Positions 14,677-49,586 of a DNA stretch of 64,000 bases are shown one piece after another. The position numbers were made by a program, and so were the translations under genes. Where the stretch lies: IMG/VR virus record IMGVR_UViG_3300027782_000025, positions 186,001 through 250,000 of that record, one strand, 5' to 3'. The notes beneath the pieces were generated by a model that was not told where the DNA came from, searched no databases, and saw only the letters and a program-made list of their open reading frames with translations. How positions within the stretch are numbered: the first letter of the stretch is position 1; every line of letters begins with the position of its first letter.

Positions 14677-17600
14677 ATGAGGCTTACTGATAATATAAAA
14701 GCTAAAATAGAGGAACTCTATAATCTTACACCAGAAGATATTCACGGTGTTAGCCTAGGATATAAGCATAAAAGCGGCGCTAACACTGGCGAGATAGGCA
14801 TAGTATTTAGCGTTCTTAAAAAACTAAGTAGAAGTGAGTTAAAACCATCAGATATCTTGCCATCTACTATTACTGTAGACGGCGTTGATATTATTACTGA
14901 TGTTATAGAGGCTAAGCCAATTAAGTTAGTCTCTTGCTATCCTAACATGAGCTCTACTCCGCTGACTTCTTATATTGGCACCGATACAAATATCACACGA
15001 TTGCAAGGGCATGATACAGCCCTTCTAACACCGATGAAAGGTGGTCAAGAATTAGTACAATTTCCTACTAATTGGACAGCTGTTAATAACAACGGCCAAA
15101 CGAGCTATAATTTCGATGTGGGCACATTATGCATGTTTTGTATCGATAGTTTAGATTTTAGGGTGGTTGGTCTTACGAATAGTCACGTTGCAATTGACAG
15201 AAGAAATATAGCCACAGACAGAGATATAGTATTAGAAACGCAAGATCCTTATAACATTTACGAAGACATGACGTGGGTTTATGATGGAAAGAAGCATCCG
15301 CCCAGTATGGCTGCCTTTAATACTTTTAATAACCTTAATCTGGTCGGTAGATTAAAGAGGTACATCCCTGTGACTTCAGGCATAAATTATGTAGACGCAG
15401 CTCTCTACATTCCTAACGATTCTTATATTGATGTGGCTTCATCTTATAACACCTGGCACCCTATTGGCAGCGATAATTACGCATTTAAACCAATACCTCC
15501 TTTCGCTTCAACCAGCGAGATTGACAGTCTATTGGCAAATGCTAGCACCACACCAATATACAGCACCGGCCGTACAACCGGGCCAAAAGGGTTTAGTCAG
15601 ACTGCATCATGTAAGCTCATAATTACGGGCATTGGTGCTACGGTTACGGTCAACAATAATGCAAATTCAGCTAATAGCTGGGGTGACCTCATAGTATTTA
15701 AAAATGCTGATTCATCTTATTGGCCTATAGCTGGTGGAGATTCTGGATCTCCAATGATAGCTGTTATCGGCGGTGTCGAAAAAATAATAGGAATAGCTTT
15801 TGCTGGTAGTCCAGACACGGCATACGCTTGCAGAATCGATAGAGTTGCGCAAGAGCTGAAGATCGAATCGTATAAAAGCTTTCACACGACTACCGTTGCA
15901 GTACCTGATACTTTTACTATAGACTACACCGATCCGAGAGCCAAGCAAGCGACCATAACAGTGAATGGTGCGGTATATTATCAAGCTGGCTTTACTTTGG
16001 TTCAAGTTGCTACACCAACACCGACAGCTACTCCGACAGCTACTCCGACAGCTACTCCGACAGCTACTCCGACAGCTACTCCGACAGCTACTCCGACAGC
16101 TACACCCACAGCTACACCCACAGCAACACCGACAGCTACACCGACAGCTACACCCACAGCTACACCCACAGCAACACCGACACCCACAAATTGTTTTTTA
16201 TCTTGGCCTCAAGCTACCTCTTATTCATTTGATTATATGACTATTACTAGTATTAATTCTGGTATGGTTTTAAAACCAATCTTTGGAACTTCTAATATAG
16301 TAATAAACAGCAATAGAGAATTTTATCAAAAGGACTTTACTAGCGGTAAGCCGGTGACTTGCACCCCATTTTCTGTCGGAGATAAAGTTCTAATAGCTCA
16401 GAACTCTACACCGATGCGGGGCTATGATGGCTATTATTATATTTCTAAGATCACAAGCGGTATCCACTCTCTTGTATGCACTCTTGCAGAAGTGTCAACA
16501 CTGTGCGTAGGCGAATTGACAGGCCCCTGTGAAACGGAAAGAAACGGCACTGTTTATTACTTAGCTGTATCTCCCGATGGCTTAAATGTATATGCAACAA
16601 TATTTCAAAATCCAACGATATTAGTTTATAACAGGTCTAAGACTACAGGCGCATTAACATTAAACAGTACCATAACTATGGTTGCTGCGCTCCCAGCAGA
16701 TATAATCGTATCTCCAGATGGTTTATATGTATATGTCACTAACGGTAGTAACGGCCTTACAAAAAGCGGACCATATATATCAATTTATAGGAGAGACAAA
16801 GCTACGGGTGCACTGACAAGCGCTGGTACCCAATACACAGGCATAGATTGGGATTTTACTCTTGGCATTGCCATTTCTCCAGATAATTTAAATGCATATA
16901 CTACAAATTATGGGTCTGGTACAGTATCGATTTATAATAGAAACATAATCACAGGAGCGTTGACAAGTGCCGGCACCATAGATGCAGCAGTTAAGCTCGC
17001 TGTTGGTATATCAGGCAGTCAACCACACGATGTGATCGTTTCTCCTGATAATTTGAATGTATATGTGACTAATACCATGCCGCCAACAAATGGTTGTGTA
17101 TTATCGATCTATAAAAGAAACACAACTACTGGCGCACTAACAAGTGCTGGCACTGTACCAACTGGTAGTAACGCTAAGCGCATGTGTATTTCTCCCGACG
17201 GTAAAAACGTATATGTGCTTCATGACGGCAGTCCCGGCAAATTAACTATTTTTAATAGAAACACGACCACGGGGGCGTTAACAAATGCCGGCGACATAGA
17301 TACAGGAAATTGGCCTTGGGGTGTTAATATCTCTCCAGACGGCTTAAATGTGTATGTGACAAAAAACGGTCCGAACGAAATGTTCATCTATAGTAGAAAT
17401 AAGGTCACAGGCACCTTGATTAAAACAGGCACCAGCCTTATAAGTCTGTTTAATGCGCCTACTGATGTGGTGGTTTCACCAGATGGCTTAAATGTATACT
17501 CAGGGCTATTCAGTGGGTCTTTTTCTAGCGCGATTCCCGGGGGCTATGGCGGATCAGTTTCAGTCTTTAATAGATGTTTACCAACGCCTACACCAACGCC

Positions 17601-20511
17601 TACACCTACACCTACATCCACGCCGACGCCAAGCATTATTCAATCATTCCCTTCTGATGGTGGTGAATATAAAGTTAAATATGCAGAAGAGAATTATGGC
17701 AAAGCACTAGCCGTCAGTGGTGATGGTAAGATCCTATTGGTTAGTGCTCCGATCGCCTCAACAGTATTTCAGAATACGACCATGACTAAGTGCGGAGCGG
17801 TTTATATTTATGAACGAAATGCTAACAATGTGTGGGTAGGTTTACAAAAAATATTCTCACCCAATCCAACAGCAAATGCAAGTTTTGGTGAAGGTTTAGC
17901 ATTATCACATAATGGCCAAAGAATATTCGTCGGCCAACCAAACGCTAACTCTGGCGCCATTATGGTTTACAATAGAGTCGGCAATGAATACATCTACGAT
18001 AGTGATTTGCCGATCACATCAGACATGCTATTACATTCGACATTTAATGCCGAGGTGGTTAATTGGGGATATCGTTTGAGCTGCACTCCTGACGGTCTAA
18101 CCGTAGCTGCTATTTCTCCAAACACAATAGCTCCTGGCGAATACACTAAGCAATTAGATAATTGGCCAACCGGATTTTACAATGGCTCGAATCCTACGGT
18201 ATTCACTGTCAGTATCTATCAGCCATCCAGTGGTGCTGAATGGCGCTCGACAAAGAATGATTATGGGATATCTTATATCAGAAGAAGCGGCGGCGGCATT
18301 GAGGTGACAGCAAATCAAAGCAAAGTATCGATAAAAGGGTATTTCAGACAAAATGAACCTGTCTATATTCAGGACATATCTGATATTCACCCTGAATATA
18401 CTGGGTTCTACACTACGACCCAGCCAGCGGTTACTAGCGGCATCTATTATACCATGAACATTTACCCATTAGGAAGCAACGGAATAAGAACAACTACAGA
18501 TCCTATGAGCTCATACGCTGGCAATGTTGCTGTGTTTAATTATCAGAATGCAGGGTCTAGTATGTCTTGGGTAAGACAAGGTTACATGTTGGCAGATTTT
18601 GCCGGATATTCTGAGGCCTCGTTATCATTTAGCGACGACGGTTTAAGATTATTAGCAAGTGTTAAGCGCTATGGAATGCTGATTTCATATGTATTCAAAA
18701 GCCCTTCACTATTATCGAGCTATGCGTTAACCAACATTTTGGCTCTAATCGACCCTTATCCTATCGATAACGCCGGTATCTTTGGTATCAGTGGTGATGG
18801 TAAAATGGCAATGCTAGACTATGCTTTATATTATCTTGACTCGTTGCCTATCCCAGATTATATTACAGCGACACCAAGTGCGGTACTAAAAAACATCACT
18901 TATAATGGCGTCGAGGATTTTGCTAGAAACGCGAACTATTTAGCCAAAGGCGCACCGCAGAAGTACCAGATCATATCAGATCAAAGCAGCAACGGTGCTA
19001 AGAAAAATACTACATTCAGTTATGCATTAGGTTATGGTGGTGAACCTGTTCCAGATGAATCATACATATCGCCAAGCTCAGCGCTCGACTATTCTGCAAT
19101 GTTTATCGGTGATGATAAAGCTGTTAGTAAGAATGGTGATGTGCTGGTAAGATCTTATAAAGATGGTGGCGTGAGATCTATATTATTCCATCAAAGCGAT
19201 AAACAAATTATTACAGCGCCGGCAGGCATGGTGTGGTTTGGTAACCAAGTCGAAATGAATCCAGATGGTACCTTCTTTACTTGTGTTTACGGAAAGCGTT
19301 CTGACACCGATAAGAGTATTAGCTATGGTAAATGTACCTATGTCAGAATGGGCCAACGTTTCTATAATCAGCTCGAAAATAGAATCATATATAATAACTT
19401 CCCAGCCGCAGTTTATCCTTTAACAAATCTCGCATTGCCGACCACATATGTTACGGACTCTAAGTGCATCCAGCAGATAACCAATGTTTATGGAACTGAC
19501 GCTAATTTATTAGGCATTTTTAGAGATTTAGACGAAGGTGTGTCGAAACGAACAACGACATCATGGAATAAGAATTGGCTTACAAATAATGCAGACAGGA
19601 GTCTTTTGTTTACTTCTAATACCACAGGAACGAACGGGCCAGTCACTGGAAAGAATAGTGTCGCTATTAGCGAAGATGGCGTTTCTTTTGTGGTTGGTTC
19701 GTTGTTTTCTAATAACGGCACTGGAGCCATTGAGCTTTATACTAGAGATGTGGCGCAAGATGGTACTTTTTACTCTGCTTGGTCAGCTGGTACATCGGTC
19801 TTTAAGGGTGCTGACTTCTTGTCTGTAACAGTTGATAAGGCTAATTTAAAATACCCATTATTTGGTTATTCTGTAACTATCCTAGGAACTGTTGGAAACA
19901 GATGGATCGCTGTTGGGGCTCCTAAAGCTTATGATGGCAAGGGCGTGGTGTGGATATGGAGAGTCGATGAGCGAGACCAAACGACACCCGACACTTATAT
20001 TTTAATGGGTGAGAATGCCAATGAAGGCTTCGGGACTGCTGTCAAGATTTACATAAACCCTGACACGACATATATGACTCTAGCTGTAGGTACTGATACT
20101 GGATTGGTAAAAATGTATGCTAAGACTGGGCCTAGCACTACTCCATTCGAACCAACCGGCATTATAGTGGCTCCAGACGGCAAAGATTCTGGCTTTGGTA
20201 AAGATATTAAAACGACCAGAGACGGACTCCAAAACATCATCATCACTGCGCCTTTAGCATCATATCAAGGCACTAAGCTTCAAGCTGGTGTAATATATGT
20301 TTATTCATCAGACGGAACGACATTGTTAAAAACATATAGGTCAGAATCACCACAAGCCAACGACCAAACAGGCTTTAGAGCTAGCGACCGATTTTATACT
20401 AACACTGGGGCAGTAGGATATGGTTTCAGGACTATCACTGCTATAGGTTCACCTGGTCGTAATAATGGCAATGGGCAAATCGAAATTACTTTTGAGAACC
20501 CTTATCCTTAA
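14677..20511 (+). CDS. Modular fibre protein with N-terminal trypsin-like (NAL1-type) serine protease, lactonase-like propeller and FG-GAP repeats (1944 aa)
   Basis: GVSLGYK...TDVIE prodomain-like N-terminus. Catalytic triad motifs TNSH(170)V, VD(240)AAL, GGDS(356)GSP. (TPTA)n linker, SPDG repeats, and FG.AL.VS...VSAP...GAVY.Y repeats. Confidence 0.75.
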   Translation: MRLTDNIKAKIEELYNLTPEDIHGVSLGYKHKSGANTGEIGIVFSVLKKLSRSELKPSDILPSTITVDGVDIITDVIEAKPIKLVSCYPNMSSTPLTSYIGTDTNITRLQGHDTALLTPMKGGQELVQFPTNWTAVNNNGQTSYNFDVGTLCMFCIDSLDFRVVGLTNSHVAIDRRNIATDRDIVLETQDPYNIYEDMTWVYDGKKHPPSMAAFNTFNNLNLVGRLKRYIPVTSGINYVDAALYIPNDSYIDVASSYNTWHPIGSDNYAFKPIPPFASTSEIDSLLANASTTPIYSTGRTTGPKGFSQTASCKLIITGIGATVTVNNNANSANSWGDLIVFKNADSSYWPIAGGDSGSPMIAVIGGVEKIIGIAFAGSPDTAYACRIDRVAQELKIESYKSFHTTTVAVPDTFTIDYTDPRAKQATITVNGAVYYQAGFTLVQVATPTPTATPTATPTATPTATPTATPTATPTATPTATPTATPTATPTATPTATPTATPTPTNCFLSWPQATSYSFDYMTITSINSGMVLKPIFGTSNIVINSNREFYQKDFTSGKPVTCTPFSVGDKVLIAQNSTPMRGYDGYYYISKITSGIHSLVCTLAEVSTLCVGELTGPCETERNGTVYYLAVSPDGLNVYATIFQNPTILVYNRSKTTGALTLNSTITMVAALPADIIVSPDGLYVYVTNGSNGLTKSGPYISIYRRDKATGALTSAGTQYTGIDWDFTLGIAISPDNLNAYTTNYGSGTVSIYNRNIITGALTSAGTIDAAVKLAVGISGSQPHDVIVSPDNLNVYVTNTMPPTNGCVLSIYKRNTTTGALTSAGTVPTGSNAKRMCISPDGKNVYVLHDGSPGKLTIFNRNTTTGALTNAGDIDTGNWPWGVNISPDGLNVYVTKNGPNEMFIYSRNKVTGTLIKTGTSLISLFNAPTDVVVSPDGLNVYSGLFSGSFSSAIPGGYGGSVSVFNRCLPTPTPTPTPTPTSTPTPSIIQSFPSDGGEYKVKYAEENYGKALAVSGDGKILLVSAPIASTVFQNTTMTKCGAVYIYERNANNVWVGLQKIFSPNPTANASFGEGLALSHNGQRIFVGQPNANSGAIMVYNRVGNEYIYDSDLPITSDMLLHSTFNAEVVNWGYRLSCTPDGLTVAAISPNTIAPGEYTKQLDNWPTGFYNGSNPTVFTVSIYQPSSGAEWRSTKNDYGISYIRRSGGGIEVTANQSKVSIKGYFRQNEPVYIQDISDIHPEYTGFYTTTQPAVTSGIYYTMNIYPLGSNGIRTTTDPMSSYAGNVAVFNYQNAGSSMSWVRQGYMLADFAGYSEASLSFSDDGLRLLASVKRYGMLISYVFKSPSLLSSYALTNILALIDPYPIDNAGIFGISGDGKMAMLDYALYYLDSLPIPDYITATPSAVLKNITYNGVEDFARNANYLAKGAPQKYQIISDQSSNGAKKNTTFSYALGYGGEPVPDESYISPSSALDYSAMFIGDDKAVSKNGDVLVRSYKDGGVRSILFHQSDKQIITAPAGMVWFGNQVEMNPDGTFFTCVYGKRSDTDKSISYGKCTYVRMGQRFYNQLENRIIYNNFPAAVYPLTNLALPTTYVTDSKCIQQITNVYGTDANLLGIFRDLDEGVSKRTTTSWNKNWLTNNADRSLLFTSNTTGTNGPVTGKNSVAISEDGVSFVVGSLFSNNGTGAIELYTRDVAQDGTFYSAWSAGTSVFKGADFLSVTVDKANLKYPLFGYSVTILGTVGNRWIAVGAPKAYDGKGVVWIWRVDERDQTTPDTYILMGENANEGFGTAVKIYINPDTTYMTLAVGTDTGLVKMYAKTGPSTTPFEPTGIIVAPDGKDSGFGKDIKTTRDGLQNIIITAPLASYQGTKLQAGVIYVYSSDGTTLLKTYRSESPQANDQTGFRASDRFYTNTGAVGYGFRTITAIGSPGRNNGNGQIEITFENPYP
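16009..16188 (+). repeat. 12-bp tandem repeat encoding (TPTA)n
   Basis: Perfect GCTACTCCGACA copies followed by GCTACACCCACA variants. Confidence 0.9.
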
Positions 20512-20523
20512 TAGAGTTTAACT

Positions 20524-22452
20524 ATGAAATATGGCCCATACAAATATTATGCATCGATACTTGGATATAGAACTTCATTTTATACTGGGAATAATTATCC
20601 AATCATAACAGCCACAGCCGGTTTATTTGACTTTACGAATTATTCCGCTGGTTTTTCTATTCCTTTTTTTAAGATGTCGGTCAAATTATTTTCTAGAAGC
20701 AATGGCCCTTTGCTCGGAAATACTGCAAATGGTCGCTGGCAAGAATTAAATTTATCATTTATGGCTGGTAAAGTCACGGCCGTGTCGCAAGTAGCTGATT
20801 TTATAAATTCAAAGCTAGTATTTGTGAAAGCATCTGTAGATTCTGATTCAAGGCTCGTACTTACTGCTGATAGATGTACATCTAATCCAGATGAAGAAGC
20901 AACTGTAGATTTTCTAGTGGTGGGCGGGGATACAAGACAATTTGATGCCCAAAGATCGAACTTATCAACTAATGCTATCATGTCCGCATCAGTTTTTCCC
21001 CTTTCTAAAATTGGTAACACAGACGTCGGTAACCAGAATATATGTAATTCTGGGTTTGGTTTTTCTACATCAGTGTTGGGTAATGTGGTGTGCCCAAGCA
21101 TTTTTCCGAGCAGTACATCTCAATCGCAAACAACTAACACTTTGGGCTATATTACATGTTGCGATGGTTATACGCCTAATACAATCCATCAAAGGGGCGT
21201 TTGGGATTTAGGGGGTCAGATAAACCCAATCATCTTTATAAAGATGCATAATAATAACACCATTACCTATAATAAAGACGCTCCAAATGGTTTAGTGATA
21301 CCGATTTACTCTGGCATTCTGGCAGTAAAGTTTACGGATAAAAAATATACTTCACAAGAAATAGTAGACACAATAAATCTTGCTCTAAGCGAAATATCTC
21401 CTTGCGACGGCGTGTTAAACTTTACGCAAGCATGTTCGACAGCCAATGGCACGATCCCTTTCAAGGCCACCGTTAGCCCAGATGGAAGAATATTAATCTG
21501 TCAATCATTTTATGAATTGGCGATAAGTGGTTCAAATAGTTATCTAGATTATATATTTTCATTTGATAAAATCGAAGAAGGTCAGACATGTAAAGCGAAA
21601 GTCGGTTATATGTTATCAGACATTCCAAAAGGCTGCGCGATGTATAATATAAGTGAAGCTAAGACAGAAGCAGAAATAAAATCGATTGTAGACACAAAAA
21701 TCGCTAGAATAGCTAATTTTCAGTATGATGTTTACGATTATACTCCTAAAGCTATTGTTGAAAAAATATCCGACTACACCGGCCGCGGTATAAGCTATGC
21801 CTTGGCGCCGACACTTACTGGGCCGCTATCCGATACTGCATTTGCGCTGGCCAATGAAGCAACATCTTTGTCTTCAGCGCTATGGACTACAAACCAATAC
21901 AATAACAAATCGAATTACGCTGAATTTTGGACTACTGTCAGTTTAAACGAAGAAGGCATAAAAGCCGCCATCGGCCATAATAAAACTATCATTAAAGTCT
22001 TATCTGTCTCAGCATCTATTAAAGCTTCTTGGAACTACTTTGGCCATATAGCTGGGGCCTATATAACGTATCCATTTTATAACTGGGCTCTTGTTTTAAA
22101 CACGAGCACATACTGTAAAGTCCAGCCTTTAAAAAATTCTGACACGATTCATTTTTCACAAAATGGAATACAATGTAGAGATTACGGAGCAGACTCGTCG
22201 AACAATGTCTTGCCATCTTGGGATGGAAATACAGAGTGTTTGGATTACATTAGATCTAGAAATAAATCTTGTAACACCGATCTGGCTCAGATTAGCACAG
22301 TAGAAATACCAAGAATATATGGTGAATATCGCGTCGGTGTTGTGTTTGATTATAAATTATGGTCAAGATATAATCCAAATGGGGTAAATAGTCTAGATTT
22401 CGCCGGCGCTTTTGCCATACCGACTATTACTTTTAAAGTAGCTTACTACTAG
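20524..22452 (+). CDS. Putative virion structural protein, Cys-rich (642 aa)
   Basis: Directly downstream of the fibre genes. Two internal segments of type T..E(I/V)...IN..L...A.V..D.R(L/I), a pattern seen in tail proteins. Confidence 0.45.
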   Translation: MKYGPYKYYASILGYRTSFYTGNNYPIITATAGLFDFTNYSAGFSIPFFKMSVKLFSRSNGPLLGNTANGRWQELNLSFMAGKVTAVSQVADFINSKLVFVKASVDSDSRLVLTADRCTSNPDEEATVDFLVVGGDTRQFDAQRSNLSTNAIMSASVFPLSKIGNTDVGNQNICNSGFGFSTSVLGNVVCPSIFPSSTSQSQTTNTLGYITCCDGYTPNTIHQRGVWDLGGQINPIIFIKMHNNNTITYNKDAPNGLVIPIYSGILAVKFTDKKYTSQEIVDTINLALSEISPCDGVLNFTQACSTANGTIPFKATVSPDGRILICQSFYELAISGSNSYLDYIFSFDKIEEGQTCKAKVGYMLSDIPKGCAMYNISEAKTEAEIKSIVDTKIARIANFQYDVYDYTPKAIVEKISDYTGRGISYALAPTLTGPLSDTAFALANEATSLSSALWTTNQYNNKSNYAEFWTTVSLNEEGIKAAIGHNKTIIKVLSVSASIKASWNYFGHIAGAYITYPFYNWALVLNTSTYCKVQPLKNSDTIHFSQNGIQCRDYGADSSNNVLPSWDGNTECLDYIRSRNKSCNTDLAQISTVEIPRIYGEYRVGVVFDYKLWSRYNPNGVNSLDFAGAFAIPTITFKVAYY

Positions 22453-22460
22453 GTTTAACT

Positions 22461-23843
22461 GTGCTAACCATAATACAATATTTCGATGGTAAAATAGATT
22501 ATACAAGCATATTTAACATATTATCTGTGTTTGGTCAAGAAGAACGTCAAGAAATAATTATCGTCCATAAAACTGATCATAAACCGAAGATAGTTCTAAA
22601 AGGCATACAGTTCATAGAAATAAAGGACCATGACGCCACAAATTCTGCATCGTTAAACCACATTATTAATAGCCGAGCTGCTAATTTTATTCTTTTTATA
22701 AATGGTTCAGCATATTTTTTGCCCGGTTTTTACGAAAACATATTAAATTTCATAGCTACTAATAAATCAGATATTGTCTCTATCGACTCCACGATCATTG
22801 ATATCGCCTTTAATTGCGACACTGAAGGCACGAGAACTGGTAGGCTTACTTTTGATCCTGATTTCAAGATAGTTAGGGAAAAAAATAAAGATTCTAATCA
22901 TACCATTATTAACCCTTCGGCTTTTATATTTGATATTAGTGTTTTTAGAGAAGCAGAAGGCTTCGATGTACCTTTAGAGCTAGGAGCAGAGACCGCAATA
23001 GCACTATCGATTGACATTGTTAGGAGAGGATACGAGATTACATTTTACGATGCTTTGCCTATTAAAACGGACTCAAAACCATTCTTTAAGAATGAAGAAA
23101 ACGTAAAATATTTAAAATCACAATATGGCTTTGACATGGCTGGCGAGATATTATCACATCCTATGGCCGAGAGAAAACGCAGCGCTGATTACAGCATGCA
23201 CTTGGATGATTATTATATAAGGCATTTCCCGAATTTTATTATTGATAGAGATTTAAAGCGAAAATTTCGTAATAAAAATATCGTGATTCTATACCCAGGC
23301 GTCTCCTTGGAAGATATAGCGCCGATTAATATTTATCATTATGATTATGTCATAGGAATCGATTTCGCCGGCAGGATTTTTAAATGTGATTTTGTTTTTA
23401 CCCAAGAACTACATATACTCTCTGACCTTCTCAGCACATATAGCAAGCAATCTTTAATAGCGCCTGATTACATATATGACAAGATGCAAAATAAATTCGT
23501 ATTGCTTAAAGATGTGACTAATAAAGTCGCTGCTATTGACACTACCACTGACAAAAATAGTATCATGACTACTGGGCTGTATTTTCTTGATAGTAATCCA
23601 CTTATTTGCCTAACCCATATGTTAATATCAGCCAAGCCAAAGAAGATACAAATATTGGGGGCTGACTTCAAGTGGTCTAAAGGTAAAAGTCATATCGCCA
23701 GCAGTTACTATAATAATGGGTATGCTCTTGCTGAAAATGAATACCATCGCGAAGACTATGCTAATTCTTTAAAATTATTAGAGAGTCTCGGCAATTTGGC
23801 TGAGAACCTTGGCGTAGCTTTGATGAGGAATCATTATGTCTGA
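22461..23843 (+). CDS. Glycosyltransferase: degenerate GT2-like N-domain plus DUF115/Maf (MptE-like) C-domain
   Basis: GTG start. N-terminal GT-A-like pattern (EIIIV...N...FILFIN...FREAEGFD). C-terminal KNIVILYPGVSL...VIGID...KKIQILGADF resembles the DUF115/MAF_flag10 signature. Confidence 0.5.
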   Translation: MLTIIQYFDGKIDYTSIFNILSVFGQEERQEIIIVHKTDHKPKIVLKGIQFIEIKDHDATNSASLNHIINSRAANFILFINGSAYFLPGFYENILNFIATNKSDIVSIDSTIIDIAFNCDTEGTRTGRLTFDPDFKIVREKNKDSNHTIINPSAFIFDISVFREAEGFDVPLELGAETAIALSIDIVRRGYEITFYDALPIKTDSKPFFKNEENVKYLKSQYGFDMAGEILSHPMAERKRSADYSMHLDDYYIRHFPNFIIDRDLKRKFRNKNIVILYPGVSLEDIAPINIYHYDYVIGIDFAGRIFKCDFVFTQELHILSDLLSTYSKQSLIAPDYIYDKMQNKFVLLKDVTNKVAAIDTTTDKNSIMTTGLYFLDSNPLICLTHMLISAKPKKIQILGADFKWSKGKSHIASSYYNNGYALAENEYHREDYANSLKLLESLGNLAENLGVALMRNHYV

Positions 23844-24144
23844 TCCAACTATCATGATTATTATATCGATGCTGATGATTATGATGTCACTGATTATGAT
23901 ATTACTAGTACAATCGACCATATTACTTAATAAGATTATTAATGCTGAGGAAAAGCAGCCGAAGCTTGTTGATAAACAACAAATTATAGGCTATCAACAA
24001 TCATCGCTTGAAAAAGAACCTGTAAAAAAATTCGATACTTTAAAAGTGCCAGATTTGGATCCATTTTCTATAGCGCCTAATTTAAAAAAACCACCAAAAT
24101 CAGCTGGTGGTTTTGGAAATAAAACAGATCAAAATGATCCATGA
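23836..24144 (+). CDS. Hypothetical single-pass membrane protein
   Basis: Strongly hydrophobic N-terminal ~28 aa followed by a Lys/Pro-rich tail; overlaps both neighbours. Confidence 0.6.
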   Translation: MSDPTIMIIISMLMIMMSLIMILLVQSTILLNKIINAEEKQPKLVDKQQIIGYQQSSLEKEPVKKFDTLKVPDLDPFSIAPNLKKPPKSAGGFGNKTDQNDP

Positions 24145-25657
24145 TTTTTCGATAAAAAAACAGGTAAATGATTCTAAGCTGATTACTCAAAAACCGAAAG
24201 TTCCAGAGTTAATTATTAAGGCACCTGTTCATATCATACCTGTCATTGCGCCGATCAAAATCGAAGCCAAGCCCACAATATTGAATGAAAAAACCATTCA
24301 AAAACCGATTCCTATTGTGCCCATCGATAAACCAGCCGAAAAGCCGGAAAAAACAAAGCACTTGCTATCAGGCGACATAATCCCCGATGAAAAATATGCC
24401 GAATATCATAAAAACATTTATGACAAGAAATATTATGAAGCAGTTAAGACAAAAGATGACTTAGTGTTAGGCACATTTGAGACCCCTCCTAAGATCAAAT
24501 CTTTAACTAAAGATGGTGTAGTATATAGAATGGGCGATTTAATTTCTCTCGAAAGGAAACCTATCATGCCGCATCTTGGCCTTGACATTGGCACTAAAAC
24601 GATCGTAGCTTCATTTAAGAACAAGAACGGTGATATAAATTATATATCTGAAATTAATGGGTTTTGGCCTTTCGAAAGAGCCACAGCATTTATTGAAAAC
24701 ATGCTTAAAGATCCAACTAAAGTTAGATCCGACGGCACCAGTAGGCCAGCACATTATTTTAAGCATGAAGAATCAAATCAACTAATCGTGCTTGGACGAG
24801 ATGCTGAAGAATTAGCCTATTCAAAGAATGATACGATGAAAAGACCAATGGCTGAAGGCGGAATTACACCAGATGAAATGTCTATGACGGTGCTGAGCAG
24901 CATCATCCATGGGATCTTAGAGACCGCAGAACGCGATGTTGGTAAGTTTGATAATAATTTGACATTGTGTTATTGCACGACAGCACCGGCTTTAAATAAA
25001 ACAAATAATATTGAATATCACGAAAGAGTTATCGATATCATCCTTAAGAGTTATAACTCACAGAGTGCTATAAAACTTCAAAAGATAAAAGAAAGTCATG
25101 CGATAGTTCTAAACCAAAGCCCAGACGGCTCTGGGATCGGCATCAGCTGGGGAGCAGGCACGGTAACGGTGACATATGTTAAGTATGGCTTAGAAGTTTA
25201 TAGTTTCTGCTGGGTTGGCGCTGGTGACTGGATAGACGAGAATGTAGCGATTAGACATGGCTATGATGCACATGCTATGAAAAGCATGAAAAAGAACAGT
25301 AAGGAAACTCCAACCACAGTATCAAAAGTCAAAATGGACATAGATCTTACCCCCGGCATACAGTATGCCGACAGGCTTCAGTTAGATATATCGCTGCACT
25401 ATGACGTGCTTATTAATCAAGTAGTGTCAGGTATCGTGGCCGGTTTTAAGGAAAATGAGGCGCAGGCAAGAATCGAAAATGGCATTAATGTTTATATGGC
25501 TGGCGGCACTAGCAGTCCGAAGGGCTTTGCTGAGCGTGTGGCTTTAATATTCAATAATAATGAATTACCTTTTGTTTTAAATAAAGTATCTGTGGCAGAA
25601 AAGCCACTATTTACCGTTGCGGCAGGGTGCTTGACAGCAGCAGAGATGTTCGAATAA
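24107..25657 (+). CDS. Actin-fold ATPase (MreB/MamK/ParM-like) with Lys/Pro-rich N-terminal extension
   Basis: Phosphate-1 LGLDIGTKTI, connect-1 ESHAIV, phosphate-2 GIGISWGAGTVTV, adenosine VYMAGGTS, connect-2 VAAGCL. Alternative start at ATG 24134. Confidence 0.75.
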   Translation: MVLEIKQIKMIHDFSIKKQVNDSKLITQKPKVPELIIKAPVHIIPVIAPIKIEAKPTILNEKTIQKPIPIVPIDKPAEKPEKTKHLLSGDIIPDEKYAEYHKNIYDKKYYEAVKTKDDLVLGTFETPPKIKSLTKDGVVYRMGDLISLERKPIMPHLGLDIGTKTIVASFKNKNGDINYISEINGFWPFERATAFIENMLKDPTKVRSDGTSRPAHYFKHEESNQLIVLGRDAEELAYSKNDTMKRPMAEGGITPDEMSMTVLSSIIHGILETAERDVGKFDNNLTLCYCTTAPALNKTNNIEYHERVIDIILKSYNSQSAIKLQKIKESHAIVLNQSPDGSGIGISWGAGTVTVTYVKYGLEVYSFCWVGAGDWIDENVAIRHGYDAHAMKSMKKNSKETPTTVSKVKMDIDLTPGIQYADRLQLDISLHYDVLINQVVSGIVAGFKENEAQARIENGINVYMAGGTSSPKGFAERVALIFNNNELPFVLNKVSVAEKPLFTVAAGCLTAAEMFE

Positions 25658-26337
25658 TGAATATAATTCATGTCGATGGTAGTTTGGTAGCTATTTTAAT
25701 AAAAGAAACTATATATATCATCGACATGGATAATTTTACGGTCCATGACCAGATTGGTGCACGGCTAGCTATCCAAAACATTGATGACTGGTTATTTAAA
25801 AACACCTTATGGGCTCATGGCATTTTTAATTTAAAGCTTTTTGTTAATTTCTTCTTACAAGGACGTGAATCTATAGTAATTAAAGACTTAGGCGTTTTAC
25901 TGTCAGAATTTATCGCTCACCTTTTTAAAAATGATCAGATCGGCCAATTGTTGAAAATGTATGATGTTGAATTACTAAATTTAGAAACAATTGACAGAGT
26001 AGTCTTACCTAATCTTAGAGATAATTTTGAAGCACACCGTCTAAAAAATGGTGAATTAGGTCTCGAATTGTTCCTTAGAAGACTAAGAGACCGAATCGCT
26101 ATATTAAATCCAAACGAAACCAGAGTCATTGATAGCTTTCTAAGTAGGTTAAAAGAGCAGCATGTCGATATAAAGATGGCTATACCCGATGGCCTTTTAG
26201 AACTAGCGAATAATTTTTTATGCACGCAAGATGTTTATACTTCTAACATAAGATACCCCAATATCATCGAATCTTTTGAGAAAATTAAAGCTCCAAAAGG
26301 TAAGAGAAATGGATTAGAAACCGTATTATCTTCATAG
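25627..26337 (+). CDS. Hypothetical protein
   Basis: 236-aa ORF (ATG at 25657 likely) filling the gap before dnaE-N. Confidence 0.6.
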   Translation: MLDSSRDVRIMNIIHVDGSLVAILIKETIYIIDMDNFTVHDQIGARLAIQNIDDWLFKNTLWAHGIFNLKLFVNFFLQGRESIVIKDLGVLLSEFIAHLFKNDQIGQLLKMYDVELLNLETIDRVVLPNLRDNFEAHRLKNGELGLELFLRRLRDRIAILNPNETRVIDSFLSRLKEQHVDIKMAIPDGLLELANNFLCTQDVYTSNIRYPNIIESFEKIKAPKGKRNGLETVLSS

Positions 26338-26350
26338 TATAGGAGATAAT

Positions 26351-27751
26351 ATGGAATATCAAGGTTCATCAGATTTTGTTCATCTTCACTCTCACACACT
26401 TTATAGCATGCTTGATGGTGTGGCCTCTCCGGCCCAATATGCCGAAGCTTGTTATAAAAGGAAGTACCAAGCGATGGCTATCACCGAACACGGCCATATG
26501 GCCAGTGTTCCTGAAGCTTACGCTGCTTTTAAACAATATGGTATCAAATACATCCCTGGGTGCGAAATATACTATAATGATTTTGAACTAAAAAGGCAAG
26601 AGCTTTTGGCAAGCGGAATAAATGTCAGATCGCTAGAATGGAGAAAAGAGAATCCAGAGCTAGCAGGAAGAATTATCAGAAATAGACATCTCACAGTAAT
26701 TTGCAAAAACAAGACCGGATTTGAAAATCTCTTAAAGTTAACAACTCAAGCATATGAGACAGGCCTGTTCGGCGTATCTATTAAACAGTATAATCGCATA
26801 TGGTTTGAAAAGTTATGTGAATATCGCGAAGGACTTATTATATTATCAGGATGTCTAAATGGACCTATAAGTCATGAATTGCGTACTAAATCGATAGTAA
26901 ATAAAGCAGGCGATGTCATCAGAGAAATAAGCCGAAAAGAAAGGCTTGAAAACGCTATCGCCAATATAAAAAAATTTAAAGAAGCGTTTGGAGAAGACTA
27001 CTACATAGAACTACAGATGCCTGGTGTTGAAGGCGACATGTTTGTGTTTCAGACATCTATTATGCTGGCAGACCATTTCAAGATTAAGACCGTGCTGGCT
27101 AATGATTCTCATTACATGGAAAGAAAAGATTTTCAAATCCAAAAGATCATGATGGCGATAGCTCAAGACGTAACTGTTGACTCTCCTGATTTATTTCATA
27201 CAAACAGCGACGAGCAATACTTCAAACAGCGTAGTGAATTATGGAGTAGATATAATGAGACTGAATATTCCAAAGGGTATACGGCTAGAGAATTCGAACT
27301 AATGTGTGATCATACTTTAGAAATAGCCGACAAATGCGAAAATATCGAATTTGATACGGATCCAAAAATACCGACCATCGTAGACGCTGATAATGAATTA
27401 CGGCGCTTGGTCGCATCAAAGCTTATATCGTTAGGACTTCATAAAAATGAACAAAAACACTTGATCGATGGTAGAGAAGTTACCTATCTAGACCAAGCTA
27501 AAATCGAATTAAATCGTTTTATAGAAAAAGGTTTCGCCAGCTATTTTCTCATTACTAAGAATATTATAGAGTACGGTAAAGAACAAGGTTGGCCGTTCAC
27601 TGCTAGAGGTAGCGCTGGAGGCTCCTTAATTTGCTACTTATTAAATATTACATCAGTCGACCCTCTTTCGTGGGGTCTTTCTTTTGATAGATTTCTTGCA
27701 CCGAGCCGCGGTGGCTATATGCTTAATGTCAAGATGACTAAAGGAGATTAG
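26351..27751 (+). CDS. dnaE: DNA polymerase III alpha, N-terminal half (PHP domain + thumb/RGS segment)
   Basis: FVHLHSHTLYSMLDG, ITEHG, PGCE, ANDSHY, RGSAGGSLICYLLNITSVDPL, FDRFLAPSR. Stops just before the catalytic PDIDID. AGGAG RBS upstream. Confidence 0.9.
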   Translation: MEYQGSSDFVHLHSHTLYSMLDGVASPAQYAEACYKRKYQAMAITEHGHMASVPEAYAAFKQYGIKYIPGCEIYYNDFELKRQELLASGINVRSLEWRKENPELAGRIIRNRHLTVICKNKTGFENLLKLTTQAYETGLFGVSIKQYNRIWFEKLCEYREGLIILSGCLNGPISHELRTKSIVNKAGDVIREISRKERLENAIANIKKFKEAFGEDYYIELQMPGVEGDMFVFQTSIMLADHFKIKTVLANDSHYMERKDFQIQKIMMAIAQDVTVDSPDLFHTNSDEQYFKQRSELWSRYNETEYSKGYTAREFELMCDHTLEIADKCENIEFDTDPKIPTIVDADNELRRLVASKLISLGLHKNEQKHLIDGREVTYLDQAKIELNRFIEKGFASYFLITKNIIEYGKEQGWPFTARGSAGGSLICYLLNITSVDPLSWGLSFDRFLAPSRGGYMLNVKMTKGD

Positions 27752-27752
27752 C

Positions 27753-28184
27753 TTGCAGAAGTATTTATTACACGCTTTGAACACACATTTAAAAGTCATG
27801 CAAAAGCCTACTGAAACATTATGTGTATTCTCGCTTAAATTCATCGATGTTCTTATAGATGACGATAAAGTCAGAGCTGAGAAAGAATCACTAGATTTGT
27901 TAATAAATATTCAAAATAATATAATTTCTAGCATTGTCGAAACTATTGACCGCCTAGAGAAAGAAGCTACCGATTCTACTAAAGTACTGGGATCGGCGAT
28001 GCTTAATACAAGAAAATCTATTTATTCTCATACAATAAATTTAAAATTAGTAGATGTAAGTAATCTAGAAGATAGATATAACAAAGCTATAGTTGAAATC
28101 GCTAAAGCGATGAGGTTATTTAATCTTTGTGGTCTTTCTGAAGCAATTAAAATAAATGATGTAAATGGGAACCAGATATGTTAG
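27753..28184 (+). CDS. Hypothetical protein (between the dnaE halves)
   Basis: 143-aa helical ORF, tightly packed; start codon uncertain. Confidence 0.5.
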   Translation: MQKYLLHALNTHLKVMQKPTETLCVFSLKFIDVLIDDDKVRAEKESLDLLINIQNNIISSIVETIDRLEKEATDSTKVLGSAMLNTRKSIYSHTINLKLVDVSNLEDRYNKAIVEIAKAMRLFNLCGLSEAIKINDVNGNQIC

Positions 28185-28624
28185 AGATGCAAATAAATAG
28201 ATTAGATAATTCCAAGATTAATTCTAAAATCGTCGTTACTTTAATAAAAAATAATGGCAAAAAAATGAAGACCCAACGGCGTGATATCGCTTTTAAATTG
28301 AAAATGACTGATGATACCATATATAAGTATCAAGCTATCCTAGTTGGTCTATCTGCGATAAAAGATGTTAATCAATCGATAAGAATCAGCATGTTGGGGT
28401 TTGAATCGAATGATTTATATGGTACATCAAACGATAAACAGCTATATTTCGACGAATTAAAAAGACGTATTATCAAAATATGCCAACGTCATAATAATGT
28501 ATTTTTTGATGCTAATATGATAGCTTTAGATAATGATTATGTCAATATAATTAAAAAGTATTTAGTATCACAATCAGAGTACCATGATACCGGTACAGTC
28601 TTAATCGATAAATCTAAGGTTTAA
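28178..28624 (+). CDS. Hypothetical protein (between the dnaE halves)
   Basis: 148-aa ORF overlapping the previous stop codon. Confidence 0.55.
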   Translation: MLEMQINRLDNSKINSKIVVTLIKNNGKKMKTQRRDIAFKLKMTDDTIYKYQAILVGLSAIKDVNQSIRISMLGFESNDLYGTSNDKQLYFDELKRRIIKICQRHNNVFFDANMIALDNDYVNIIKKYLVSQSEYHDTGTVLIDKSKV

Positions 28625-28686
28625 TACTATGGCTGTTTGGCACAACACAAGCTTAGATCTTTTTATGTATATTGAGATATAAAATT

Positions 28687-29031
28687 ATGGATCATAAAGG
28701 TGAATATGATAAATATGCTTTCATTATAATGGAAGCGCAAACCGATAATATTGTCAACATAGTACGATTAAAGTCGAACGAAGAAAGACTGAAAACCATT
28801 AAAAGCATACGTTCTAAAGGGCAATATTTATTTTACGCTATGACGCACCAAGACGAAAAAACCAAGAGGGTCACTATAAAAAGGCCCTTTGTCGTCGATT
28901 TTGATTCAGTTCCTTCAGCTGAGGAATCAAAATGTATTGAAAATGATATAAAGAAGCTTAGCTGCAAAAAATGTGGCAAAAGTTTTACTTCTACTTCTGG
29001 GCTAACGAACCATCTAAATGCAAAACATTAA
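28687..29031 (+). CDS. Protein with C-terminal classical C2H2 zinc finger
   Basis: CKKCGKSFTSTSGLTNHLNAKH matches C-x2-C-x3-F-x5-L-x2-H-x4-H; overlaps the dnaE-C start. Confidence 0.7.
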   Translation: MDHKGEYDKYAFIIMEAQTDNIVNIVRLKSNEERLKTIKSIRSKGQYLFYAMTHQDEKTKRVTIKRPFVVDFDSVPSAEESKCIENDIKKLSCKKCGKSFTSTSGLTNHLNAKH

Positions 29032-31741
29032 ATCTTGGGAAGAAATTGTCGAAAAGGCTGGAGAGTTGGTTACCGATAAACCGAAGATTTATAAAGACAG
29101 ACTAAAATTCGAAATATATGAAATCGAAAAGCAAGGGGCAGAACGCTACTGGTTAGAATTAGTGACTGATGGAACGACTTTCGATGCAAACCCGAATCGT
29201 CTATTACTACCATACCTTTTAAATCTAGTTTCTGTCGACCCAATCTCCACAGACCATAGCGGCATCATGACAAGCATATCTGCCAATGATGTTTTAAAAT
29301 ACAAAGACCATAACAATGGTAAAATGCCAACAGGAATCTACAGAGATTCTGACATGCCGGACATCGATATAGATTGCTTGCCTGGGGCCAGAGATCATTT
29401 AAAAGAATACGTAATTTCTAAATATGGCCAGAATTCAGAAGATAGTTATGGATCTGTATGTAGCGTTGGCACATGGCAAACTTATAAATTCAAATCTGCA
29501 ATAATCGATGTCTCTGTGGCTCTTGGAATAATGTCTAGATTTGATGCCGAAAGAACGACCACACAATTACCAGAGCACGCAGATGATTTGCCGGAAAATG
29601 GTATATCAGTCTGCAGAGGTAAATATTTAAAGGAAGGTGTCGAGATAGAATGTGGCACTATTCACGGTGATGCTACTTGCCCATCTTGTAAGCAATCCAT
29701 CACGGATGCTCCGACTATTGGTCAGCTTATTGAAGAACTACCAGTTCTCAAAGAATTCGCGATAAAAAACCCTGAGATCATAGCATCAGCGATCAAACTA
29801 GTAGGCAGAATTAGAAACATGGGCATGCACGCCGGTGCTTTACTAATAACAGACAGAGCGTTGTTTGGCAATATACCTATGGCCAAGAGCAGTAATAAGG
29901 GCTATTGGGTAAGCATGTGGACAGAAGGTAGAAGCACCCAGCTCTCAAAATTTGGGTATGTGAAATGGGACTGGCTTGGTCTTAAAACCTTAGAATATAT
30001 ATTTAGGTGTTGCGAGATGGTTAAACTTAACCGCGACATCAATTTTGGCGAAAATTTGTCTGGCTGGGAAGACATCGATCCTAAGCAACGTAAAGCCGGC
30101 TTTTTTATCGATGCTTCTGGTGTTAAACACATTATCAGCCTCGACGACGAAGGGGCTCTAAAGCTAGCAAATAAGCAGAAATGCGATGGTATTTTTCAGT
30201 TCGACACTGAATTAGCCATGTCTTTGCTGGCTCATGGCGTTAGGAATTTCGAAGACTTAATGTTAATCAATGCGATGGGCCACCCAGGGCCAATTGCCGC
30301 TCTACCAGAGACAATGGCAAATCGTGACGATCCCACGATGGCATGGAAAAAACGCATGCATCCAGAAGTCTATAATATTCTTAAAGAAACTTATGGACAA
30401 CTGGTTTATCAAGAGCAATTAACGCAGCTTTGGCAGAGATTAGCTGGATTTACTGCGCCTGAAGCTCAAGAAACGAGGAAGGCCGTTGCTAAGAAATGGA
30501 CACACAAATTAAGAAGCGTAGAACAGAAATGGGTCGCTGGTGCTTCTAAAACCATCGGCGAAGACGAAGCTCGCACTATTTGGTCCAAAATGGTATCATT
30601 CGGTCGTTATGCATTTAATAAATCACATTCTGTAGCTTATTGTTTGGTAACCCTACGATGCTTGTTCCTAAAAGCGCATTTTGCGCCTGAGTTTTGGGCA
30701 TCTGTCATGAATGATTGCCATCCAGATAAGCTGGTACGTTATATGGGTGTTGCAAGATCAGAAGAATGGAAACCGACAGCAATCACTAAACTCGGTTCGA
30801 GCAGATCAGATGATCCATTGCGCTTTGAAGCTATCGACATTAACAATTTATCATTAAAGTTTATAGTAAAAGATAACACGATATTTGTTGGTGTCAGTAG
30901 CATAAAAGGCTTTGGCGAAAAAATAGCTGAGTGCTTAATCACTGCACACAAATATATAAACATGGATGATTTTATTTTAAAGACCGGGATAAAATCTAAA
31001 ACAGTGTTAGAACGGTTAATTAAACTTGGGGCCTTTAGAAATCTTGAAAGACACAATAATAGCAAGGCTTTGTGGGTTTATTATCAAACGAAGTATGGCA
31101 ATGGGCCAGATGCAAAAGAGACTAAAAGCTTCATCTCCAACCTCATTATTTCTAAACAAGGATGGAATGATGGCTCTATTGCGGCTGAGAGGGAAAGACT
31201 CGCCAGTGAATACAGATTGATCTATCCAAAGAAAAAAGTTATACCTAAAAAATTACTTAATTGGAACCCTGAACCGATCATCGATTTTGATGCCGTTCTT
31301 GGCGCTATCGGAGATGATTTTAGTTTTGAAGAAAGACTACAATTTCAGAACGATTACTTAGGATATTACATCGACTCGCCTCTAGGATTATTTAGTTGCA
31401 GGGGTGATCTAACGATTGCTGCAGCAAAGACAAATGCTAAGTCCGGCCAAGACATCATAGCTATCGAAGGAATAATTGTAAATATAGAATATGCTACATC
31501 AAAGAATAATAAACCGTACGCTAAAATATCGACATCAGATGGTATGTTAAAAACCAGTATTATGGTGTGGTCCAAAGAATTGTCGGGGTTAGATAAAACC
31601 AAATTGATGATTGGCGCCGGAATTAGAGTGATCGTGGATTATGATGGCGAGCGAAATAGTTTTTCATTACGACGCAATACTTCGATAAACATACTGAAGA
31701 GAAAGCCAACTAATGCAACTGCCGACGAAAGACGGGATTAA
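29018..31741 (+). CDS. dnaE: DNA polymerase III alpha, C-terminal half (palm/fingers/HhH/OB)
   Basis: MPDIDIDC, GMHAGALLI, VKWDWLGLKTL, DGIFQF, LVYQEQL, YAFNKSHS, IKGFGEK, and a C-terminal OB fold. Confidence 0.9.
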   Translation: MQNIKSWEEIVEKAGELVTDKPKIYKDRLKFEIYEIEKQGAERYWLELVTDGTTFDANPNRLLLPYLLNLVSVDPISTDHSGIMTSISANDVLKYKDHNNGKMPTGIYRDSDMPDIDIDCLPGARDHLKEYVISKYGQNSEDSYGSVCSVGTWQTYKFKSAIIDVSVALGIMSRFDAERTTTQLPEHADDLPENGISVCRGKYLKEGVEIECGTIHGDATCPSCKQSITDAPTIGQLIEELPVLKEFAIKNPEIIASAIKLVGRIRNMGMHAGALLITDRALFGNIPMAKSSNKGYWVSMWTEGRSTQLSKFGYVKWDWLGLKTLEYIFRCCEMVKLNRDINFGENLSGWEDIDPKQRKAGFFIDASGVKHIISLDDEGALKLANKQKCDGIFQFDTELAMSLLAHGVRNFEDLMLINAMGHPGPIAALPETMANRDDPTMAWKKRMHPEVYNILKETYGQLVYQEQLTQLWQRLAGFTAPEAQETRKAVAKKWTHKLRSVEQKWVAGASKTIGEDEARTIWSKMVSFGRYAFNKSHSVAYCLVTLRCLFLKAHFAPEFWASVMNDCHPDKLVRYMGVARSEEWKPTAITKLGSSRSDDPLRFEAIDINNLSLKFIVKDNTIFVGVSSIKGFGEKIAECLITAHKYINMDDFILKTGIKSKTVLERLIKLGAFRNLERHNNSKALWVYYQTKYGNGPDAKETKSFISNLIISKQGWNDGSIAAERERLASEYRLIYPKKKVIPKKLLNWNPEPIIDFDAVLGAIGDDFSFEERLQFQNDYLGYYIDSPLGLFSCRGDLTIAAAKTNAKSGQDIIAIEGIIVNIEYATSKNNKPYAKISTSDGMLKTSIMVWSKELSGLDKTKLMIGAGIRVIVDYDGERNSFSLRRNTSINILKRKPTNATADERRD

Positions 31742-32255
31742 ATGCGACGGCTGCGGGCTTCAGTTTCATGAAGATTTTACTTATTATTCGATAGATTTTA
31801 GAAGCGCTAAATCAAAATTTGGGCAACACTTATCATTGAGAGATCTAGACTCAGCACCAATGGTCGACACTTTTGATTATTGCAGTATGTGTTATGAGAA
31901 ACTCCAAGACAAGATAGTAGAAATAAACCAAAAAACATCTCAGAAAACTGGCTCAAGATATTGTGATCTTTCTGGACAAGATCTGATGCAGTTAAAAACA
32001 TATTACTATGCTACCATAACTGGAGCTACAGTCAAACAAACAGGTGTACCATTTACTTGTGAACAGTGCGGCCTTCAAGCGCACACCCCGACAACAGTAT
32101 GTAAGTGCGGGTCGGTTAAATATGTTAGGAAAGCCGACGTACATACTGATAAAAAATTAATAGAAATCTTCATAACACCAGATATATTTAATAGCTTTGC
32201 CGTTAGAAGAGAAAAGCATAAACAAGAAGGAAGTAATTGGAATGTTACCAGCTAA
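31713..32255 (+). CDS. Multi-CxxC zinc-binding hypothetical protein
   Basis: CDGC, CSMC, CDLSG, CEQC and CKCG motifs. Confidence 0.6.
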   Translation: MQLPTKDGIKCDGCGLQFHEDFTYYSIDFRSAKSKFGQHLSLRDLDSAPMVDTFDYCSMCYEKLQDKIVEINQKTSQKTGSRYCDLSGQDLMQLKTYYYATITGATVKQTGVPFTCEQCGLQAHTPTTVCKCGSVKYVRKADVHTDKKLIEIFITPDIFNSFAVRREKHKQEGSNWNVTS

Positions 32256-32757: not shown

Positions 32758-32761
32758 GCAT

Positions 32762-49585: not shown

Positions 49586-49586
49586 T

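Follow-up and report, generated by a model that had tools for sequence, protein, structure and literature searches.

Is an actin-like ATPase gene in an uncultured freshwater virus, preceded by an overlapping gene for a small membrane protein, the core of a filament system, and what would such a system do for the phage? Most of the phage cytoskeletons known from earlier work consist of tubulins (PhuZ/TubZ), and a few consist of actins of the ParM or AlpC type. The locus lies in a stretch of 64,000 nucleotides, referred to here as the window, that corresponds to bases 186001-250000 of the 274,625-bp IMG/VR virus record IMGVR_UViG_3300027782_000025, for which CheckV estimated a completeness of about 70%. 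The window sequence recurs across freshwater and lake metagenomes, and a phage origin of the actin gene, assumed in a preliminary description made from the nucleotide sequence, was supported by the viral record itself and by relatives on viral contigs of up to 438 kb. No tubulin gene was found in the 274-kb record. The locus probably constitutes a two-gene module, a membrane protein followed by an overlapping, translationally coupled gene for an actin-like ATPase. The interpretation favored here, tentatively, is that the pair may form a membrane-tethered Volactin-like filament module of a freshwater huge phage that organizes the site of replication or assembly.

The open reading frame (ORF) reported at 24107-25657 on the plus strand was present and comprises 516 residues when counted from the GTG at 24107, a numbering that is retained for the residues given below. 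The start codon, however, is more likely the ATG at 24134 (MIHDF...), because the protein of a 99% identical relative was called from the equivalent ATG. Within the string ATGATCCATGA, this codon and the stop codon of the preceding gene overlap. The five actin-superfamily motifs were all located where they had been placed in the preliminary description. The protein matched the Pfam family Volactin (PF25216) with a score of 131.2 bits, compared to a gathering cut-off of 35 (E = 7.4e-38), and residues 157-512 aligned with positions 3-321 of the 321-position profile, in agreement with the genome search. Volactin was the only family detected in the Pfam scan, which gave no match to MreB_Mbl (PF06723), HSP70, FtsA or PilM, and the protein had no Hsp70 substrate-binding domain. 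The NCBIfam MamK model (NF040964) gave a sub-threshold score of 24 bits against a cut-off of 400. The PHROGs had no family matching either the actin-like protein or its 102-residue partner, and the PDB, searched both by single sequence and by profile, contained no sequence match to the actin-like protein.

The AlphaFold2 model, obtained with 30 homologues, had a predicted local distance difference test score (pLDDT) of about 90 over the core, residues ~135-516, and of less than 50 over residues 1-134. MamK, MreB, Mbl, actin, FtsA, BeeR and ParM were among the top 50 Foldseek matches in the PDB, and none of these 50 was a sugar kinase or an Hsp70. The nearest solved folds were thus those of filament formers, which agrees with the assignment to the actin fold, and the grouping with sugar kinases or Hsp70-like proteins that had been held to speak against a filament system was seen neither among these 50 Foldseek matches nor with Pfam. 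The modeled core most resembled BeeR, MreB and crenactin, and the nucleotide-binding domain of Hsp70 was not far behind. Because the predicted fold by itself does not tell filament formers from Hsp70-type domains, the cytoskeletal case rests mainly on membership in the Volactin family. The nearest clusters in the ESM Atlas, at a template-modeling score of 0.89, consisted of 'Volactin domain-containing' proteins that were 92-96% viral, and a library of predicted viral structures contained no close match to the actin-like protein.

Volactin (VolA, HVO_2015) from Haloferax volcanii assembles in vivo into dynamic filaments with tips that touch the membrane, and has a role in the rod-to-disk transition and cell shape. 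The two proteins were compared by way of the motif table in the supplement of the volactin paper rather than by full sequence. The adenosine motif is TGGTSSP in the Haloferax protein and AGGTSSP in the window protein, so that GGTSSP is common to both. The phosphate-1 motif, LGLDIGTKT, likewise agrees with the D.G published for volactin. The phosphate-2 motifs, GVDFGAGT and GISWGAGT, respectively, follow a similar pattern (xFGAGT/xWGAGT), although Asp in the former is replaced by Ser in the latter. The comparison supports kinship with volactin and makes the Asp to Ser change a departure from volactin itself. The contact of the volactin tips with the membrane fits the membrane-anchored system proposed for the window protein, which nevertheless differs from volactin in being viral rather than archaeal, in having a disordered arm of 144 residues and in having a dedicated gene for a small membrane partner.

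The replacement of Asp by Ser in phosphate-2, reported previously, proved to be real but not peculiar to this protein. Among 102 full-length family representatives, obtained by an exhaustive profile search and clustering at 50% identity, the position was occupied by Ser in 101 and by Asn in one, while Asp was absent. The same representatives retained the Asp of phosphate-1 (102/102), the Glu of connect-1 (100/102) and the Gly-Gly of the adenosine motif (102/102), and PF25216 as built takes in the members with Ser at phosphate-2. The alignment thus identifies the Ser as a characteristic feature of a large subfamily, viral in part, in which the position is under strong selection, and suggests that the nucleotide site is altered yet functional. 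In ParM or MreB, hydrolysis is impaired and the filaments are stabilized when the phosphate-2 Asp is replaced, and because of this stabilization, slow-turnover filaments are a reasonable guess for the Ser-type protein.

The gene at 23836-24144 encodes a protein with an N-terminal hydrophobic helix and overlaps the actin gene, as had been stated. The protein begins with five residues and a strongly hydrophobic helix; basic residues follow, and a variable linker leads to the tail PDLDPFSIAPNLKKPPKSAGGFG. The Kyte-Doolittle maximum over 19 residues was 2.97, at residue 6, and ranged from 2.05 to 3.36 in the relatives; by the positive-inside rule the C-terminus is predicted to be cytoplasmic. The 22 partner proteins that were aligned are only about 25% identical overall, with conservation limited to the initiator Met and the tail, for which the consensus is LPPExIAPxLKKPPxxGGFG. 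No variation occurs at A80, G92, F93 and G94, and the four prolines P76, P81, P86 and P87 are conserved at 90% or more. The LKK of the tail resembles eukaryotic WH2 motifs, a likeness on which no claim is based. The partner had no convincing match in Pfam, PHROGs or NCBIfam, and a search for a second copy of its gene found none.

Gene-neighborhood conservation had been suggested as a means of checking the association, and in all 30 of 30 distinct loci, in which the actin core is 54-99% identical, the membrane-protein gene was located just upstream of the actin gene, usually overlapping it, as expected of a conserved, translationally coupled partner. The pair of transmembrane protein and actin was kept where the flanking genes differ (loci L004, L006 and L028). 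In clades with 33-39% identity, the upstream protein had no transmembrane helix; its N-terminus, MFKWLKRLLG, looks amphipathic, and its tail, P.FFA...FG.EV, is related. A similar protein of 75 residues was encoded upstream of the actin gene in one further relative. In clades with 27% identity, the partner was again a transmembrane protein, of about 105 residues, with a different tail. The actin is thus repeatedly accompanied by a small protein that is targeted to the membrane and has a conserved tail, and this recurrence across clades argues for a functional pair. A hairpin at 24087-24114, an 11-bp inverted repeat that emerged from the terminator scan, was rejected as a selected RNA structure. 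The folding energy of this region was not below that of synonymous-codon shuffles (25 distinct relatives, mean z +0.18), and the inverted repeat, located in the codons of KKPPKSAGGF, arises from the peptide's own codons, those for Lys-Pro-Pro being the reverse complement of those for Gly-Gly-Phe.

The Lys- and Pro-rich N-terminal extension of the actin-like protein was also confirmed. It comprises 144 residues when counted from the ATG, with 16.7% Lys, 14.6% Ile and 10.4% Pro. In comparisons with two relatives, the substitutions at the first, second and third codon positions numbered 12/19/55 and 17/23/50 in the extension, and 5/1/135 in the core. The concentration at third positions indicates that the extension is translated, and by this pattern it is coding in the actin frame and is evolving far faster than the core. 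Its length varies from about 60 to 230 residues among the relatives in the clade. Conservation is found in the N-terminal ~33 residues and in a block preceding the core (VYRLGD..GRRxxM, with VYRMGD in the window), while the linker between them is variable. At the same N-terminal position, other family members have a Zn-ribbon (P0181 and P0198) or a weak match to a ParB helix-turn-helix, and in an Acidobacteriota Volactin cluster of the ESM Atlas, 96% of the proteins have a DNA-binding domain of the HU/IHF type. The folded domains at this position elsewhere in the family are in keeping with a role of the N-terminus as an adaptor arm.

Met154, which is located directly before the core, is invariant in 30 sequences and may be the site of a second translational start. 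The relatives have AGGAGA 6-7 nucleotides upstream of its ATG, and the window has AAAGGAAA at the same spacing, which resembles the ribosome-binding sites used elsewhere in the window. The two Arg residues at this position were encoded by AGG AGA in 17 of 26 distinct sequences, although AGG and AGA account for 13% and 28% of the Arg codons in these genes; the sequences being related rather than independent, this codon argument for a Shine-Dalgarno-like site is only suggestive. Several gene callers begin the proteins of relatives at Met154, which results in calls of 360-366 residues. An internal start that gives a core-only isoform beside the long form is a possibility that these features raise.

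The family extends well beyond this clade. The profile search gave 656 representative clusters at E values up to 0.001 and 382 at E values up to 1e-10, in which the clade of the window accounted for two full-length representatives after clustering. In a FastTree phylogeny of 115 sequences, the 102 full-length representatives and 13 locus-derived proteins, the huge-phage clade was monophyletic (support 98) and nested, with support 100, within a clearly separate group of 20 rows in which other proteins from viral contigs were included. Most of the members of this group that were checked (L051, L053 and L055) had virus-like gene contexts, and members from viral contigs were also scattered elsewhere in the tree, at several places. 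A relative was found in only two of the 50,697 deposited phage genomes, both being uncultured huge phages (485 and 595 kb) with 24-30% identity, and a pattern scan of 185,579 species genomes revealed no close relative. Distant family members do occur in bacteria. The names of the nearest clusters of distant relatives were uninformative. Since the distant members score 157-277 bits against the Pfam model, above the score of this clade, the clade is best placed by sequence as a divergent Volactin branch.

Several relatives had further domains or neighbors. The viral Volactin homologues P0129, P0132 and P0141, of about 700 residues, are interrupted by an intein with a Hint splicing domain and a LAGLIDADG endonuclease, and an entire viral cluster in the ESM Atlas is of this intein-interrupted type. 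A bacterial Volactin (L054:7001-10483, GCA_016209705.1) is fused to a Wzz-GNVR-ParA-like module, that of a Wzc-type tyrosine kinase, within a polysaccharide gene cluster. The bacterial fusions (Wzc-type, HU/IHF and Zn-ribbon) suggest a modular adaptor-plus-filament design across the family. On a virus-like contig, a gene for ribosomal protein S21 (L051:6583-6894) was located three genes downstream of a distant Volactin homologue.

The genes around the module in the window are closely packed. The gene for a 460-residue glycosyltransferase-like protein overlaps that of the partner by 8 nucleotides, the partner gene overlaps the actin gene, taken from the ATG at 24134, by 11 nucleotides, and the ATG of the following gene, which encodes 226 residues, lies on the actin stop codon with an overlap of 1 nucleotide. 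The DNA polymerase III alpha subunit (DnaE) gene begins 13 nucleotides further downstream. Because the genes are so tightly packed and overlapping, the block from the 460-residue gene to DnaE looks like one transcription and translation unit. Consensus scans for promoter- and terminator-like sites gave none above the chance level. A lake metatranscriptome contained short contigs, with zero differing letters from the window, over the glycosyltransferase-like, partner, actin and 226-residue genes, which are a weak sign of expression given that DNA carry-over is possible.

These observations are consistent with a mechanism in which the actin core would bind ATP and assemble into filaments like those of volactin, MreB, MamK and BeeR, and the conserved tail of the membrane protein would recruit or nucleate the filaments on the cytoplasmic side of the host membrane. 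The N-terminal arm would serve as a flexible tether, spacer or adaptor. Initiation at Met154 may supply free, core-only subunits for co-assembly with the tethered ones. The module would then organize or position a site of phage replication or assembly in the infected cell. This is the most likely task and is preferred over the scaffolding of glycan synthesis, 1) because the pair heads a replication module that includes a split DnaE, RecA, DnaB and gp32, and 2) because DNA-binding fusions occur elsewhere in the family and AlpAC, which is encoded by the Corynebacterium prophage CGP3 and required for efficient phage DNA replication, provides a precedent. A more elaborate version of this proposal, which we consider unlikely in its entirety, is that huge phages possess a membrane-anchored actin cytoskeleton of their own, with its three parts encoded within about 1.8 kb. 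The LKKPP..GGFG tail of a bitopic anchor would dock on a filament made up of a long isoform with the tether arm and a core-only isoform produced from the conserved internal ribosome-binding site, the Ser would tune hydrolysis to give long-lived filaments, and the whole would position a replication or assembly compartment as the actin counterpart of the PhuZ tubulin spindle.

The components of the module have parallels in several known systems. BeeR, a three-stranded actin of Verrucomicrobiota (PDB 8r2n), also has a disordered N-terminal extension before the actin core, which in that protein prevents bundling. However, BeeR is 16% identical in sequence to the window protein, its extension has 30-50 residues rather than 144, it keeps the canonical residues of the ATP site, and no membrane partner has been described for it. 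MreB works at the membrane with the bitopic protein RodZ (2wus, among the Foldseek matches), as is proposed here, although the window partner is far smaller than RodZ and unrelated to it. The AlpC/AlpA system likewise combines an actin-like ATPase encoded by a phage with a small partner that is co-transcribed with it, close to or ahead of genes for replication, but this likeness is an analogy only. AlpA, and ParR of ParMRC, are DNA-binding adaptors that act on repeats near the operon, whereas the partner in the window is a membrane protein and no such repeats were found. In PilM-PilN and FtsA-FtsN, an actin-fold ATPase interacts with a small bitopic protein via a short conserved cytoplasmic peptide, an analogous architecture in which the peptide is N-terminal in PilN and FtsN and C-terminal in the window partner.

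The positions of the module and of the adjacent features are listed in Table 1.

Table 1. Positions of the features of the locus in the window
Feature	Position	Strand	Basis or remark
Glycosyltransferase-like gene, 460 aa	22461-23843	+	Conserved upstream neighbor; Pfam matches of orthologues
Membrane-protein partner gene, 102 aa	23836-24144	+	Single transmembrane helix, short N-terminus, variable linker, conserved C-terminal motif
Predicted transmembrane helix, residues ~6-31	23851-23928	+	Kyte-Doolittle
C-terminal motif PDLDPFSIAPNLKKPPKSAGGFG, candidate docking peptide	24049-24117	+	Alignment of 22 partner proteins
Volactin-family actin-like ATPase gene, 507 aa	24134-25657	+	Pfam PF25216; alternative start GTG 24107
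N-terminal extension, 144 aa, Lys/Ile/Pro-rich, predicted disordered	24134-24565	+	pLDDT; codon-position substitutions
Shine-Dalgarno-like AAAGGAAA and ATG of Met154, candidate internal start	24552-24568	+	Conservation
Actin-fold core, residues 154-516	24566-25654	+	Alignment, AlphaFold2 model, fold matches
Phosphate-1, LGLDIGTKT	24575-24601	+	Motif search
Connect-1, KESHA, residues 328-332	Glu329 codon 25091-25093	+	Motif
Phosphate-2, GISWGAGT	25139-25162 (Ser347 codon 25145-25147)	+	Ser where other actins have Asp
Adenosine, MAGGTSSP	25496-25519	+	Motif
Connect-2, PLFTVAAGCL, residues 500-509	25604-25633	+	Motif
226-aa protein without known fold	25657-26337	+	Goes with the DnaE gene, not the actin gene
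Split DNA polymerase III alpha gene (26351-27751 and 29018-31741)	26351-31741	+	Pfam PHP, DNA_pol3_alpha, finger, HHH_6; phrog_405
RecA	36643-37755		Replication/recombination ORF
DnaB-like helicase	38081-39421		Replication/recombination ORF
Family-A DNA polymerase fragment	40486-41685		Replication/recombination ORF
gp32-like single-stranded DNA-binding protein	42434-43387		Replication/recombination ORF

The window copy of the 460-residue glycosyltransferase-like protein had no Pfam match, while its orthologues in the relatives matched Glycos_transf_2 with up to 73 bits and had a weak C-terminal MptE-like domain. Its nearest cluster in the ESM Atlas was a viral glycosyltransferase of family 2 (GT2), and synteny of the gene held in most of the relatives with at least 54% identity. 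The 226-residue gene of the relatives was located directly 5' of the PHP/DnaE gene, even where this was 5-7 kb from the actin gene, and was missing from some loci. The AlphaFold2 model of its product (pLDDT 77) had a small N-terminal beta-sheet domain and long helices, and no fold match in the PDB; given its placement before the DnaE PHP gene, the protein may be a polymerase accessory factor. In most relatives, 1-7 kb separate the actin gene from the DnaE gene downstream of it. In the window, its two halves are separated by the ORFs 27753-28184, 28178-28624 and 28672-29031, one of which encodes a C2H2/BED-like zinc finger. The recurrence of the split and of intervening ORFs in relatives (L002, L006, L014 and others) indicates that the arrangement is conserved and not an assembly artefact. 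The module of replication and recombination genes further downstream comprises the last four entries of Table 1, of which the family-A polymerase fragment is short and matches the polymerase domain only in its C-terminal part.

The window also contains giant ORFs of 4418, 1944 and 1768 residues at 1408-14664, 14677-20511 and 56682-61988, respectively. The 1944-residue protein has long (A)TPT repeat linkers and repeated units of the 'SPDGLNVYVT' type and may be a glycosylated fiber or surface protein. An ORF of 642 residues is among the genes upstream of the actin module. Genes for sugar metabolism are located at 33688-34404, 46671-51121 and 52788-53813 (minus strand) and comprise a CMP-sugar cytidylyltransferase, a two-domain GT2, a GT1-like glycosyltransferase, a GT2_5 and a GDP-mannose 4,6-dehydratase. 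Judging from this gene content, the phage invests heavily in glycan synthesis.

This investment bears on the explanation that the actin and its anchor act on glycans rather than DNA, providing glycosyltransferases at the membrane with a scaffold or guide, much as MreB directs wall synthesis, for the modification of the host envelope or the glycosylation of the giant PT-repeat fiber proteins. The overlapping GT2/MptE-like gene is conserved upstream in most relatives, a GT9-like gene is located directly upstream in a distant relative, and genes for GT2, WavE and NTP-transferase, or a gene for a sulfotransferase, are found near others. The bacterial Volactin fused to the Wzz-GNVR-tyrosine-kinase module is in a polysaccharide cluster, Haloferax volactin acts in cell shape, and the giant PT-repeat proteins are encoded just upstream. 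Glycan genes are, however, plentiful all over the window, which makes their adjacency less telling, and the glycosyltransferase is not adjacent in L004, L006 and L028, where the transmembrane-actin pair is still present. A role of this kind is judged improbable. About the same standing is given to a non-polymerizing actin-fold ATPase, either a PilM/FtsA-like scaffold for membrane assembly or an Hsp70-like chaperone module. The small bitopic partner with a conserved cytoplasmic peptide mirrors PilM-PilN (2ych is among the structural matches) and the phosphate-2 Asp has been lost, but the exclusive Pfam match to Volactin, the missing Hsp70 substrate-binding domain, the filament formers among the top structural matches and the filaments formed by volactin, the founding member, make this doubtful. 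Moreover, FtsA- and PilM-like proteins can oligomerize, so that this explanation overlaps with the filament module proposed here.

It is also conceivable, although very unlikely, that the membrane protein has no functional relation to the actin, being perhaps a lysis, exclusion or other membrane factor, and that the linkage reflects nothing more than inherited gene order. The close relatives all represent a single phage lineage, in which synteny is broadly conserved, and a complex prediction with the core (residues 135-516) and the tail (residues 45-102), using separate alignments, gave a score of 0.30 compared to a mark of 0.32, a result that speaks neither for nor against binding. The pair is nevertheless kept where the flanks differ, partners with a membrane-targeting N-terminus recur at the same position in clades that are 27-39% identical, the start/stop overlap is conserved, and conservation of the tail motif alone in a small protein is typical of a docking peptide.

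Several observations weigh against a membrane-tethered filament module that organizes replication or assembly, and the complex prediction without a verdict is counted with them: 1) the residue replaced by Ser in phosphate-2 is the Asp that binds metal and nucleotide in other actins, 2) the glycosyltransferase on the other flank of the module is equally conserved, 3) a search of 20000-34000 for centromere-like repeats found none beyond two trivial short arrays, 4) no recognizable DNA-binding adaptor was located near the actin gene, and closeness to the replication genes is the only link to DNA, 5) the conservation of MIH(D/N)F may stem partly from dual coding with the stop region of the partner gene and 6) the relative L057 has the usual ATG of the long form replaced, so that the long form may not be universal.

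The Volactin family and phage actins in general are already known. A search of the full-text literature, the coverage of which leaves out most subscription journals, found no paper on phage volactin-like proteins, and the huge-phage module, with its anchor, tail motif, tether arm and possible dual start, as well as the family-wide Ser, appear to be undescribed. Volactin represents an actin lineage different from those of the phage cytoskeletons studied to date, one that is widespread in uncultured phages and essentially absent from the deposited phage genomes. The conserved membrane partner and the tether arm provide a concrete two-protein hypothesis for the huge-phage clade. The family also offers a natural active-site variant, in which Ser is fixed where actins, Hsp70 and sugar kinases otherwise almost always have Asp, and the kinetics of this variant could reveal how hydrolysis controls filament dynamics.

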